Shown piece by piece: positions 17,389-35,300 of a stretch of 64,000 nucleotides of DNA; within the stretch, counting starts at the first letter, position 1, and the number at the start of each line of letters is the position of its first letter. The position numbers and the translations under genes were made by a program. This DNA comes from Oopsacas minuta (taxonomy: Eukaryota > Animalia > Porifera): assembly GCA_024704765.1 (NCBI GenBank), contig JAKMXF010000322.1, positions 186,001 to 250,000 on the forward strand, in the 5' to 3' direction. Below the pieces are notes generated by a model that made no database searches, was not told where the DNA came from, and saw nothing but the letters and a program-made list of their open reading frames with translations.

Positions 17389-20300
17389 ATGGCTAATGCT
17401 AAAGTGGATTGCAAAGTTGTACTACTTGGGAAGGAATACGGAGGCAAGACCTCTCTTGTTGAGAGATTCGTACACGGAAAATTCCAAGATGGAAACGGGA
17501 CATATCAAAACGTGAGTTTAGACTATTCAATCAATCCACAAATATATGTCTACGAATATCGAACACGTCAGCCAAAAATTCGCCAATTTTCAAACCAATT
17601 TCTTTCATTTTCATAGAAATATTTTCACTAATTGATGAGGTGTTAATGACCTCTTTATTTAACCTAAACTACCACGATACCCTCTTGTGTACCCTAATAT
17701 GAACCCGCGTACGCCAAATACGTCCATGTCCATCAAATTAATAATAATTACATTGACTACACTAGGCAGACAAAGTAATTGAGTAATTACTCGAATATTG
17801 CTGATATAAGCTTAACAGTAATATTCGTGATTTATAGTTTCATATTGCGTTAATTACGTCGTCTAACCGGAAGTATCTGGAAATATATTTTTATTTTCAT
17901 AAAAATATCGGAAGTGACAATTTTTCAATAAAAATTATCTTTCAAGTTTGAGGTTTCTTGCATTAATCTGTTTGTATTGTGTTTTAACATATTTCCATAT
18001 TCGTAGAATTATTGATTGAAAGTATTTGCCAATTATGGTTCCATATTATACATATTTATAAGTGGATTTAAAGCATAATTCACATCGTTCAGTTCCCGTT
18101 TATACTTCTGTCCATTCAGCGAAGATATTCGAGGCCTTATTCAGTGATAGGATTGGAGACCACTTTGCATTTACTGTGTGGACATTTGAAAGCATCAATT
18201 GAATGTCTTTAGTGCCTCCAATTATAGTGTCATTTTAACGAATTTAATTAAGCTCTAAGCTGTTAGCACAGAGAGTAATTTAAGATTTTTCCATTTGTGC
18301 CACGTATACTTGTGTCGAGTAGAGCCACTTTTAGATCTATTATTCTTCCATTTATTCTCTAAGCTCCCTAGTAACCCATTAATGAGGATGTTATGTATCT
18401 AAATTAGTAACAGAATTACACAGCGAATATTCAACTGACTTTATGGAATTATATTTTGCCACTGGAATGCACCTTAAAATTCAGATTGTGGACATTATCA
18501 AATACTTCCTGCTTAGCATGTTCTCATGCAAATCAATACGAGGCCATTTGTATGGACTTGTAGAGGAACCATGATTGAATTAGTGTCCATTAATGAAAGA
18601 CACTTTTTCAAAATGGCTGTAATCTTGGTTAATTATGGAGGTGATAAATTAATCATATTAGATGATTAATATGATTAATTTTTGATTAAATAAATTCTCC
18701 TTATTTGTGTTTATTTTTAACAAAGTGCATTATTCTCAAATCAATATTCTAATGATGAATGCTGTTTTAGTAATTCGTAATATTTAAAATATCATATTTT
18801 AGGGACAGTTCCAGTCATTTTAATATTATTTCAATAAAATACAAAATTTTACTCAAAATTCTGTCCTGATTGCGATGGTTCAGCACTTTCTGTCCTCCAT
18901 AGCTGCTGAACTGCCACTAGCGTTCGTACGGCCCAAAAGGCGGACATATCTATATACACATACATCTTAATGATTCAAGCAACCCTTTAATTTGATAAAA
19001 TGTCCTTATATGGAAGTTATGATTAAGCATTACTCATATTTATAGAATATCTTTGGTGTAACTGATTTTCCATTAGGTGTCTTTGTAAGTTTACTACGGG
19101 GGTATTTGGTTACACTTTCCAGAGGATATCATTATATTTGTAAGTTATACGTCTTAACTCTTTGGATAGTTGCAAGATTGGTTGCTCTGGTTAGTTAATA
19201 TTAATTTGATAACAAGAGCTATTTATCCCTGAATTCACGAAAAACGGGTATTCTTGCATCTTTTTGGCACATCGACCCCTCCTTGGACAATTTGGACCCC
19301 TAATCAAGGACGTAGACCCTTGACAGGACTCTGGGTATCGACTTGCTCCCGCCTCGTATTGTTATAATTGAAAATTTGATAAATATATTTATTCATATAT
19401 GTTATAAGCAAGTGCATTAGTAGCAAAGAAATTAAGCATTAGCATAGCAACAGGTAAGTGTAGATGGAATTTATAAATAATTGATAAATATATAAGTTAA
19501 TTTTGTTGATTTTCTTGTATTTTTTCCCAGAGCATTTGTTCTAGTTCAGAATAGCTATTTTCTGGACAAGTGAATGTATGGATGGGACATTCACGGTTTA
19601 GTTCTATCTGGTCTTTGAAGTATCCGTCGAAAAATGGATGGTTGAGTGCTTCTTCCGCCGATAGCCGCTTGTGTGGGTCGAATTCCAAAAGTCCTTTTAG
19701 AAGATTTTTGAGATTTTCCCCTCCTTCTTTACAAAGTTGGTTTGTAGAGAGAATATTATCTAATTCGGCGATCTGATATTGAGGGAAAGTCGATAGTCTT
19801 TTCAAGGAATCTTCTGATAATTTCGGATAAACACTCGCGAAATCTGGACAGCCCAAAATCTCGCATATTTTATTCAAATGTCTGTCGTCATTCAAATCTT
19901 TTTCATCAACTTTAAATATACTTTTTCCAACGCAAAGTTCGGCAAGGATGCATCCTACAGACCACATATCGATTTTCTTATCATAGTCCAATCCAAGCCA
20001 TAATTCTGGCGCTCTATATGACCGCGTGACTATTTTCTTTGTCTTTTTGTTGTTAGAATCGAAATTGGCTAAACCGAAGTCCAAAAGCTTTACATTTGAT
20101 TCATCGTCAATGCCAATATTTCCCGGTTTCAGGTCTCGGTGCATTATATTATTTTCATGAAGATAGTGAACTGCGTAGATCATTTCGCCGACAATCTTTT
20201 TGATATGCTCGAGGCCAAGTTCTGTTTCGATCATGCTCAAGGTCCCTTCCATAAACTCCATCACGATGTAGAAATAAGACATTTCTGATTGTCGCATAAC

Positions 20301-32300: not shown

Positions 32301-35300
32301 CTGAAGTTTGTTGACTTATTTGAGGGAAATTTGATAATTCGAGTTTTTCTCCACCAAAAATGTCGATTTCTAATCTGTTGTAATATTCGCTAGCTCCAGT
32401 TTCTTCGAAGTATTCATGTTGAAGGGCATCTTCAAATGATATCCTGTCTTCAGGGTCGAATTGTAAGAATTTTGATAGCAAGTCTCTGGCGAGTTCGTTT
32501 CTATCCGAGTTTATGTTTTCCATTTTTATCGAATCATCTGGAATCAAGTTCTCCATTTTTTGGCCTTCGCAGTTTTTGAATATTTTTTGAGTGCTAGCAG
32601 GAAGTTTGGAGATAAATCTTTCATTCGGTGTGCCAGTTATTCGCATAATATCTGTGAGTTGATGGAATTCATGTCTCTCCTTAAATAACTGTTCACCAGT
32701 AAGCAATTCCGCAAATATGCAACCTAACGACCAAATATCAACTTTGTAATCATACGACGTGTTTAAAAGTATTTCTGGCGCGCGATATATCAAAGTTTGG
32801 ACTCCGCTAGTCATTCGTGAATTGTCCGCACTTTTTTCACGCGCCATCCCAAAATCCAAAAGTTTCAGCGTATAATCAGATCTTATTCCAATATTCGACG
32901 GCTTCACGTCTCTGTGAATTATATTTCCTTGGTGGAGTTCCTTCAAAGCGATCAATAATTGGTAGATTATCAGTGCCAATTGTTCGTGAGACCTAAGTAG
33001 TACATCATGTAACGTATTTTCCATATATTCCATCACTATATAGAAGTCTTCCATTATTTCACCAGATTTCGCTGGTGTGAAAACGTCAAGAAGTGCAACC
33101 GTGTGTCTGTTCTTTGAAGACTTCAAGAGTGTCAATTCACGGAACCAATATTTTCCCAATGTTGGGTCGATGCATTTGATCTTTTTTATTGCAACAAATC
33201 GATCGTTTTGTGTATCATATGCCGAGACGACGACTCCGTAGGATCCTTTCCCTACAAATTTTGCGTTTTTGTACTGTGTCTTTAATGTGAAACATTCGGT
33301 CCCATCCAATATAGTTTGATAAAATTCAGTATTCATTTTGTGTATATCTGTAGTTAATATGATTAGCTTACAATCGCTTGTATTTATACTATTTTCTACA
33401 AACAGTATTCTACTTTCACTTTAGGGAATAATCCAACTTACTCCAACATTTCCTTGAATTATATTACCCGAATTAATAGTGCTAAGTATATACAGTCAAG
33501 GGACAAAAGTATTCGACCACATGAATATATTGTCATAAATTGTATACTTTTTCCCGCTCCTATATATTGTATAGTCTATATTCGTAGCTGCTATTTAGTA
33601 ATTTGTATAGAATAACATATGTTTTTCAAGAATTTCAAAATAAAATTTCGATTCACACTTTTTGAAGGTGTTAATTATTAATAATTATTAGATAATTATT
33701 AATAGTCAAAATATGTGGTAATTCAAAACCTATTAAGAATCTATAATTTCTGACTTGATATTTGAATTCTACGTAGGCGAGTTACCCCAGATTGAAATTT
33801 CCAATCGGATTGAACAACTTTTACCAAAGTTATAGAGGAATTTCAATTTGTGTCAATTGTGCCACCTTTTTCCCAAGGTGGCACAAGTGGCCGCTACCAA
33901 GAGGTTATTTTGTAATTCAAGGGTTAGCATAGTCATATCATTCGAAAATATTACTTTGACTTATTCCTCCTAACCCTAGTTGATTTCCTTGTAGTGGCGC
34001 TTTTTGAAAAAAGTGACACAATTGACACAAATTGAAATTCCTCTATAACTTTGGTAAAAGTTGTTCAATCCGATTGGAAATTTCAATCTGGGGTAACTCG
34101 CCTACGTAGAATTCAAATATCAAGTCAGAAATTATAGATTCTTAATAGGTTTTGAATTACCACATATTTTGACTATCAATAATTATCTAATAATTATTAA
34201 TAATTAACACCTTCAAAAAGTGTAATCGAAATTTTATTTTGAAATTCTTGAAAAACATATGTTATTCTATACAAATTACTAAATAGCAGCTACGAATATA
34301 GACTATACAATATATAGGAGCGGGAAAAAGTATACAATTTATGACAATATATTTATGTGGTCGAATACTTTTGTCCCTTGACTGTATACATTTGTATAAT
34401 ATATTGTCATATTACATCAAATTACCTGGATTATTTAGTTCAAAATCTTATAGCAAACATCTCAATATGCTTAATAGATTACCAATCTGTGCTATTTAAT
34501 ATCTAAGTACACTGGCGCAATGTATTTATTCTAATTGTATGATTACAGTCTTTTAGTTTCAAATTTGATAATTTTCACCTTCATATTCTAAGGGAATTAT
34601 TTTTTATTTATGATATAATTCAGTTCGATTAAAGATTGATTTTCCCAAAAATCTATTTATCCCCAAAGTTTTCCTCAAATATATTTGCTCATATATAATT
34701 GTGCTATTCTCAACTTGTTAGTAGTTATACATTAACGGGTGGTGTTCCCCTATTAGCAAGTTTTTAGGGTCCATTTTGTATTGGAATTGTGCAAAATGTG
34801 ACTTGCTAATAGGTGAACTCCACTGTAATTCAGATAAGAAACATTTCCTGATTATACAAGTTCTCCTGCAATGGACAAAACACACTTGTAACTTGTTTGT
34901 GAAAAGCTACACATTTTTCTGTTAATTAACCGTAAAGCTACAGTTACATTTATTTCCGTTTTAGACAATTGGAGCAGCTTTCGCGGCCAAACGCATATCC
35001 GTTGGTAAAGAAACTCTGACGCTTGGAATTTGGGTAAGAAATTTACTTTCATTTCGTTTTATGAACTTTTTGACTATTAGGCTAATATTTGAAATTTACA
35101 GTTATTTGTGAATTAACCGTTAAACGCTATTCTCAGTTCAGCCACATATTATTAATTATAAATTTGTCAGCTTATTTAGGCTTAAATAAGAAGTGTTAGT
35201 TTCAGGTTTATTTCTTGATTATCAGTGACCACCTGATCTATATTTTCACACAATAATGTGATCATTTATTTGTGTTAAAACTGCTGAGTAATTTGCCCGA

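Follow-up and report, generated by a model that had tools for sequence, protein, structure and literature searches.

Does the first intron of a Rab24 gene in the glass sponge Oopsacas minuta really extend over 17.5 kb and contain three complete kinase genes, and if so, does it represent anything beyond an ordinary case of genes nested within a gene? The question comes from an earlier note on the 64,000-nt stretch of genomic DNA analyzed here (the window; contig JAKMXF010000322.1), which proposed this gene structure and interpreted the intron as a nursery for a gene family. The locus is very probably an ordinary host–guest (nested) arrangement, in which an eight-exon Rab24 gene holds three single-exon kinase genes (K1, K2, and K3) within intron 1. 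The nursery interpretation is not retained.

Structure of the Host Gene

The eight exons of Rab24 (Table 1) sum to 621 nt, i.e., 206 codons and a stop codon, and the introns all run from GT to AG. Exons were handled singly, with their lengths, phases, and four split codons read by eye. The proposal that exon 1 ends with YQN at 17511 and that exon 2 starts with TIGAAF at 34965 is borne out by the splice sites, the phases, and colinear Rab24 proteins. The acceptor of exon 2 has a T-rich tract followed by TTTTAG, and both boundaries of intron 1 are in phase 0. The full-length Rab24 protein from the skate Leucoraja erinacea (P0204) is colinear with the model; its residues 1–39 fall on exon 1 and 40–62 on exon 2, with no part absent or doubled across the exons. 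Exon 1 also shows a Pfam Roc/Ras match. Introns 2–7 measure 507, 261, 64, 456, 869, and 309 bp, in keeping with the range of 0.06–0.9 kb that had been given for the other introns.

Table 1. Features of the Rab24 locus in window coordinates
Feature	Position	Strand	Description
Rab24 exon 1	17389..17511	+	41 aa; ATG at 17389; P-loop GKEYGGKTS; ends ...TYQN in phase 0; donor GTGAGT
Rab24 intron 1	17512..34964	+	17,453 bp; 33% GC; kinase coding sequence is 20%
K1	19497..20630	-	Uninterrupted; 377 aa; JNK-derived; no TxY; loop stretch of 26 residues
K2	24315..25508	+	Uninterrupted; 397 aa from first ATG; no TxY; ATTAAA 89 nt past stop
Dispersed short repeat	27419..27581	.	About 165 bp; 39 more places at 72–84% identity
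K3	32242..33336	-	Uninterrupted; 364 aa; no TxY; loop stretch of 28 residues
Foldback (palindromic) non-coding repeat	33484..34393	.	910 bp; 571 bp upstream of exon 2
Rab24 exon 2	34965..35033	+	23 aa; TIGAAF...GIW; switch I
Rab24 exon 3	35541..35619	+	26 aa + 1 nt; Ras family E 8e-7
Rab24 exon 4	35881..35948	+	22 residues
Rab24 exon 5	36013..36112	+	G4 motif TKxD
Rab24 exon 6	36569..36622	+	G5 region
Rab24 exon 7	37492..37557	+	21 residues
Rab24 exon 8	37867..37928	+	Last residues and stop; AATAAA 32 nt downstream

Assignment to the Rab24 Subfamily

Rab24 is an atypical, autophagy-associated Rab GTPase of animals. Its hallmarks are a Ser that replaces the catalytic Gln of DTAGQE, TKxD for NKxD, and a CCHH-like prenylation end. 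The O. minuta gene encodes DTAGSERY in exon 3, with the Ser substitution, and CGTKFDL in exon 5, with TKxD where other Rabs have NKxD; the same DTAGSE and TKxD residues are found in the Rab-24 proteins P0204 and P0230. Exon 8 closes with ...RTCCSH and a stop, and the corresponding ends are ...GDEKRRTCCSH in protein P0348 of the glass sponge Vazella pourtalesii and ...SCCHQ in P0204. The window has a single Ras-superfamily G1 P-loop (GxxxxGK[ST]), the one in exon 1, and TSSK forms the G5 region. In a search with a profile built from cleanly aligned rows only, the best named relatives were Rab-24 proteins from sponges (Dysidea, Halichondria) and vertebrates. Judged by its sequence, then, the host gene belongs to the Rab24 subfamily; it has the P-loop, TIGAAF, DTAGSE, TKxD, and CC-x-H end in common with known Rab24, and its product of 206 aa compares with 203–204 aa in vertebrates.

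Connection of Exon 1 to Exon 2

Transcripts from related sponges connect the two exons directly. Residues 1–41 of the V. pourtalesii Trinity protein P0348 (EP00800_P011596) match exon 1 at 41 of 41 positions, and residues 42–64, directly after them, map to exon 2 at 91%. A Logan transcript protein from a second relative (P0353) likewise runs from exon 1 straight into exon 2. The joining of exons 1 and 2 in mRNA is shown only in these two relatives of O. minuta.

The earlier note also called for intron 1 to be compared in related species, and the donor after YQN proved to be the same in five glass sponges. In these five relatives, reading frames that continue through exon 1 are identical to the O. 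minuta protein at 38–41 of 41 positions up to YQN and unrelated beyond, and the next residue is always V (from GT). The intron 1 donor can be placed precisely because similarity stops at YQN in all five. The intron site is common to the O. minuta gene and the Rab24 of other organisms, with read-through frames at the same position in many other animals. Its length is not shared, with 17.5 kb in O. minuta against the roughly 29 codons that can be read through between YQS and TIGAAF in P0300, from another organism.

A different view of exon 1 is that it is an orphaned relic and that the working Rab24 transcript begins at an unrecognized first exon near exon 2. The protein record gives this some footing: the best 120 proteins of 115–366 aa from the collection searched include no full-length Rab24 from O. 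minuta, while the Vazella protein ranks seventh, and public gene calls may fail to join the two exons. A gap of this kind in the annotation is expected, since nested genes are under-called there; Francis et al. (2023, PMC10282587) give 83 annotated nested genes in O. minuta versus 2,432 in Aphrocallistes vastus, a disparity that they blame on annotation method. A replacement first exon should encode a P-loop, as a Rab without one is unable to bind nucleotide, but no second frame of this kind occurs in the 64 kb or, as far as this Rab goes, anywhere else in the genome. Scanned for motifs in all six frames, the whole window has the G1 P-loop, TIGAAF, and DTAG once each, and a permissive tblastn search of the window with the Rab24 exon peptides returned no further copy. 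The 64 kb thus contains neither an alternative TIGAAF-type exon 2 nor an alternative exon 1, the rivals that the earlier note had named. Across the genome (61.46 Mb in 365 contigs), exon 1 is unique, and the runner-up match (E = 0.03) is a different Rab. With the exon 1 protein also 100% identical to the N terminus encoded by the Vazella mRNA, and the similarity ending exactly at the donor, the chance that exon 1 is a relic is very small.

The Guest Kinases

All of the kinase coding sequence (19497–33336) lies between the end of exon 1 at 17511 and the start of exon 2 at 34965. Each of the three genes encodes a complete Pkinase domain (E about 1e-59), which substantiates the original description of three full-length, intronless open reading frames of the MAPK family in -,+,- orientation. 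The nearest solved relatives are JNK2, JNK3, and p38-delta (E about 5e-54 to 1e-51). The guests share the CMGC fold and intact VAIK, HRD, DFG, and APE motifs with the JNK and p38 MAP kinases (MAPK8–14). Unlike those kinases, K1–K3 lack the Thr-x-Tyr dual-phosphorylation motif in their activation loops, and it is absent as well from all orthologues found. The activation loop of K2 has a conserved RRMS site of the basophilic-kinase type. The canonical TPY, TGY, and TEY kinases of O. minuta are encoded on other contigs.

Orthologues of K1 (P0002–P0009; 63–75% identical) and of K2 (P0010–P0017; 70–79% identical) are each found, as intact open reading frames, in about eight other glass sponges. One of the K2 set, P0016, comes from Vazella as a complete open reading frame on a Trinity transcript. 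In a phylogenetic tree, K1, K2, K3, and one unlinked paralogue adjoin the TPY (JNK-like) gene, and the kinase duplications predate the species splits.

Contents of Intron 1 and Integrity of the Assembly

The mean intron length in O. minuta is 341 bp (PMC10280926). A rival explanation of intron 1 is that the kinase block was misplaced between exons 1 and 2 during assembly and that the real intron is short. A single O. minuta assembly stands behind intron 1, and a repeated element, the 910-bp foldback near its 3' end, could in principle mislead an assembler. The arms of the foldback are 91–98% complementary, and it recurs at about 40 more genomic places at 87–93% identity. A second, inverted copy of the approximately 165-bp repeat lies in Rab24 intron 6 (about 37256–37391). 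The window, on the other hand, is free of N, and it has no long direct or terminal repeats that bracket the kinase block. The one spacer tested, the 6.7 kb between K2 and K3, is single-copy apart from two short repeats.

Five other assemblies also weigh against misplacement. In each of them the contig with the exon 1 frame has the same length as that carrying the K1 and/or K2 orthologue, at 27,930 bases (Vazella), 379,768, 865,118, 1,074,818 (K2 only), and 1,688,171 bases. Such equal sizes suggest that exon 1 and the kinases are linked in all five relatives, which bears on linkage and not on position between the exons; the Vazella contig is a mere 27.9 kb long. Taken together, these observations make a misassembled intron very unlikely.

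Beyond the kinases and repeats, intron 1 gave no matches in Rfam and tRNA scans, and its ten longest non-kinase open frames had no match in Pfam.

Age and Origin of the Kinase Block

The nursery interpretation would have the intron actively giving birth to kinase copies; a related reading would have it receive them as recent mobile or viral cargo. Points in favor are three adjacent paralogues, their lack of introns (a trait of retrocopies), and transposable elements within intron 1. The copies are nevertheless only 36–42% identical in pairwise comparisons, and the window holds no extra kinase fragments, young copies, or pseudogenes. Orthologues of K1 and K2 in about eight relatives, duplications older than the species splits, and the lack of terminal repeats around the block likewise speak against recent birth or delivery. 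The intronless state is the norm for kinases in this genome, where all 28 MAPK/CMGC-like matches lie in long open frames and 26 of the 28 have no stop at all. More broadly, single-exon transcripts are put at 9,872 of 16,340 in O. minuta (PMC10282587). The claim of a "nested gene-family nursery" fails on the age of the duplications and on how usual uninterrupted kinase genes are in O. minuta, and it is very unlikely that copies are now being born or delivered here. A mobile-element origin of the kinase block was also considered and rejected, given the missing bracketing repeats, the single-copy spacer, and the orthologues in relatives.

The most likely history of the nested arrangement is that one inserted JNK-like gene gave rise to the three guests by old local duplications that preceded the divergence of the glass sponges sampled. 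The combination of Rab24 and kinases would have been kept ever since.

Expression of Host and Guests

Transcription of the nest can be outlined from the gene model. The Rab24 promoter would follow the preceding gene by less than 400 bp, and RNA polymerase II starting there would have to cross all 17.5 kb of intron 1. On the way, host transcription would read past the polyadenylation signals of K2, which is on the same strand, and the spliceosome would then join 17511 to 34965. K1, K2, and K3 would presumably each use a promoter of their own, two of them antisense to Rab24.

A bolder reading is that the nest, having persisted in several glass-sponge species, is not merely passive. It puts a sponge-specific clade of JNK-derived kinases lacking TxY, one member sense and two antisense, into an autophagy-linked GTPase gene, so that host and guest expression could be coupled; separately, the clade may be activated in a way that does not involve MAP2K, given the RRMS site of K2. 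This is unlikely. If it were true, coupling could occur through, for example, transcriptional interference or a common chromatin domain, and signaling resembling that of stress kinases would be tied to Rab24 output.

Place Among Nested Genes of Glass Sponges

Nested genes are presented as a hallmark of glass-sponge genomes, with high microsynteny, by Francis et al. (2023, PMC10282587), who treat A. vastus and O. minuta. The nests they describe have single-exon guests situated wholly inside a host intron, as found here, and they too occur in a compact genome, in arrangements conserved between glass sponges and with long introns that owe their length mainly to the genes they hold. What differs here is that the three guests are paralogues of each other rather than unrelated genes. 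The portion of the main text searched makes no mention of Rab24 with three paralogous kinases. With nesting published as typical of glass sponges (PMC10282587), the Rab24 nest is unremarkable for its lineage. It is an ordinary, well-supported example and not a new kind of genome feature.

The main value of the locus lies in annotation. Gene finders can model Rab24 correctly here only if they permit an intron of 17.5 kb that has other genes inside it, and any survey without exon 1 would mistakenly report Rab24 as incomplete or missing. Such an error is of consequence in a genome said to be "lacking key metazoan core genes." The nest also offers a clean, conserved locus for studying host transcription through a same-strand guest. 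Finally, K1–K3 bear witness to an ancient expansion, across the glass sponges, of JNK-derived kinases that lack TxY.

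Rab24 Gene Structure

The Rab24 gene, which encodes a small GTPase, is resolved into eight exons with GT..AG borders at all eight and a total of 621 nt (206 codons plus stop). Exons 3–8 were placed by eye and with tblastn, with exons handled singly. The model bears out the claim of an earlier note that exons 1 and 2 are separated by a 17,453-bp intron. Introns 2–7 measure 507, 261, 64, 456, 869, and 309 bp, and introns in the glass sponge Oopsacas minuta (Hexactinellida) average 341 bp (PMC10280926).

Features of the Rab24 locus (window positions) and related kinases elsewhere in the genome
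Feature	Position	Strand	Description
Upstream neighbor	11936-16998	+	Apparently multi-exon; DH/PH-like and MORN-repeat segments (by eye, ORF translations)
Rab24 exon 1	17389-17511	+	Starts at ATG 17389; 41 aa; donor GTGAGT
K1	19497-20630	-	377 aa; full Pkinase domain
K2	24315-25508	+	397 aa; full Pkinase domain
~165-bp dispersed repeat	27419-27581; 37256-37391		Intron 1; intron 6 (inverted)
K3	32242-33336	-	364 aa; full Pkinase domain
Foldback element	33484-34393		910 bp; almost perfect palindrome; arms 91-98% complementary; 109-nt center
Rab24 exon 2	from 34965	+	23 aa; preceded by T-rich tract ending TTTTAG
Rab24 exon 3	35541-35619		
Rab24 exon 4	35881-35948		
Rab24 exon 5	36013-36112		
Rab24 exon 6	36569-36622		
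Rab24 exon 7	37492-37557		
Rab24 exon 8	37867-37928		Ends ...RTCCSH, stop
Four further kinases (L008-L011)	C312:58935-59981; C314:386021-386968; C22:816301-817215; C44:667759-668667		All uninterrupted open frames

The long intron would be called into question by another TIGAAF-type exon 2 near 17.6 kb or another exon 1 near 34.5 kb. Neither is present, as several searches agree. Across the full window, a six-frame scan detects the P-loop, TIGAAF, and DTAG motifs once each, and permissive tblastn with exon peptides found no second copy of exons 1–3 in the 64 kb. A full-length Rab-24 from Leucoraja (P0204) maps with residues 1–39 on exon 1 and 40–62 on exon 2, the match continuing as far as exon 7; nowhere else in the window can it credibly be placed. 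Exon 1 is also single-copy across the genome searched (61,460,524 bases in 365 contigs).

A full-length O. minuta Rab24 protein is absent from the top 120 profile-search matches, where the orthologue from Vazella ranks seventh. This absence suggests that current gene calls on the contig do not join exon 1 with exons 2–8.

The Exon Junction and Linkage in Relatives

Exon 1 was searched against 1.8 billion representatives, followed by a word search that reached short reading frames of other assemblies. Four such frames (P0121, P0276, P0278, and P0279) match exon 1 at 38–41 of 41 residues as far as YQN, after which they diverge into unrelated residues, the first of which is always V (from GT). 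Conservation of exon 1 therefore ends exactly at the donor. Read-through at YQN or YQS is also found in frames of many other animals, and the intron position is thus widely shared.

Transcripts from relatives span the junction. A complete Trinity-transcript ORF from Vazella pourtalesii (P0348, EP00800_P011596), found in a profile search with alignment A3, matches exon 1 at 100% (residues 1–41) and exon 2 at 91% (residues 42–64), and it runs on through exons 3–7 at 71–96% identity. The same continuity from exon 1 to exon 2 is seen in P0353, encoded on a 1,081-nt Logan contig from another relative. Together these demonstrate the junction at the mRNA level in two relatives, both glass sponges; for O. 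minuta itself it is predicted.

Same-contig linkage of exon 1 and the kinases was inferred from exactly equal contig sizes, which speak to linkage rather than order or strand.

Linkage of Rab24 exon 1 with K1 and K2 orthologues in relatives
Contig size (bases)	Exon-1 frame	K1 orthologue	K2 orthologue
27,930 (Vazella)	P0276	P0007	P0016
379,768	P0460	P0004	P0275
865,118	P0121	P0008	P0463
1,074,818	P0278	not seen	P0011
1,688,171	P0279	P0005	P0014

By this measure, exon 1, K1, and K2 all lie inside 27.9 kb in Vazella. This argues strongly that the Rab24–kinase arrangement is old and against the possibility that the locus is misassembled.

The Guest Kinases

The nearest solved relatives of the three guests are JNK2, JNK3, and p38-delta. 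All three retain intact VAIK, HRD, DFG, and APE motifs and lack the TxY dual-phosphorylation motif; no additional kinase fragments were found within the window. Orthologues of K1 and of K2 occur in about eight relatives at 63–79% identity, with the TxY-less activation loops conserved. The K2 loop ...R(S)IP(R/K)... is near-invariant in about eight glass sponges (K2 and orthologues P0010–P0017). It carries an RRxS site of the basophilic-kinase type where MAPKs have TxY, a substitution that hints at a different route of activation for K2.

Kinases with TPY (JNK-like), TGY (p38-like), and TEY (ERK-like) motifs are encoded elsewhere in the genome, as is another paralogue lacking TxY, the fourth. 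In a maximum-likelihood tree, this paralogue forms one group with K1, K2, and K3 (support 93/97), adjoining the TPY gene. Several species fall within each of the K1 and K2 clades, and the duplications are therefore older than the separation of those species.

The earlier note saw in this intron a nursery for a gene family. The nested structure itself, a Rab24 intron with three intronless kinase genes, holds, but the nursery does not: The guests are only 36–42% identical to one another, and their duplications predate the species splits. Intronless frames are the norm here and no mark of recent retroposition, given that all 28 of the genome's MAPK/CMGC-like matches lie in long open frames (26 stop-free) and that 9,872 of the 16,340 transcripts in O. 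minuta have just one exon (PMC10282587). In the counts of Francis et al., A. vastus has 2,432 nested genes (12.4%) and O. minuta 83, the low figure being put down to annotation method (PMC10282587). The Rab24 locus is confirmed as a new, well-supported case of a feature already known in glass-sponge genomes.

Intron Content and Expression

Intron 1 is not swollen by repeats; only the foldback and the ~165-bp repeat were found, and no other recognizable coding sequence or known RNA was detected in it. The foldback has about 40 further genomic places at 87–93% identity and no Rfam match. It looks like a non-autonomous foldback or MITE-type transposon, recently active. The ~165-bp repeat has at least 39 other places at 72–84% identity.

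Transcription of Rab24 would be expected to cross all three guests. K2 has ATTAAA and AATAAA signals on the same strand as Rab24 and would be included in the read-through; the transcript would then be spliced over 17.5 kb. Only 391 bp separate the stop codon of the upstream DH/PH–MORN gene from the Rab24 start codon, leaving scant space for a Rab24 promoter.
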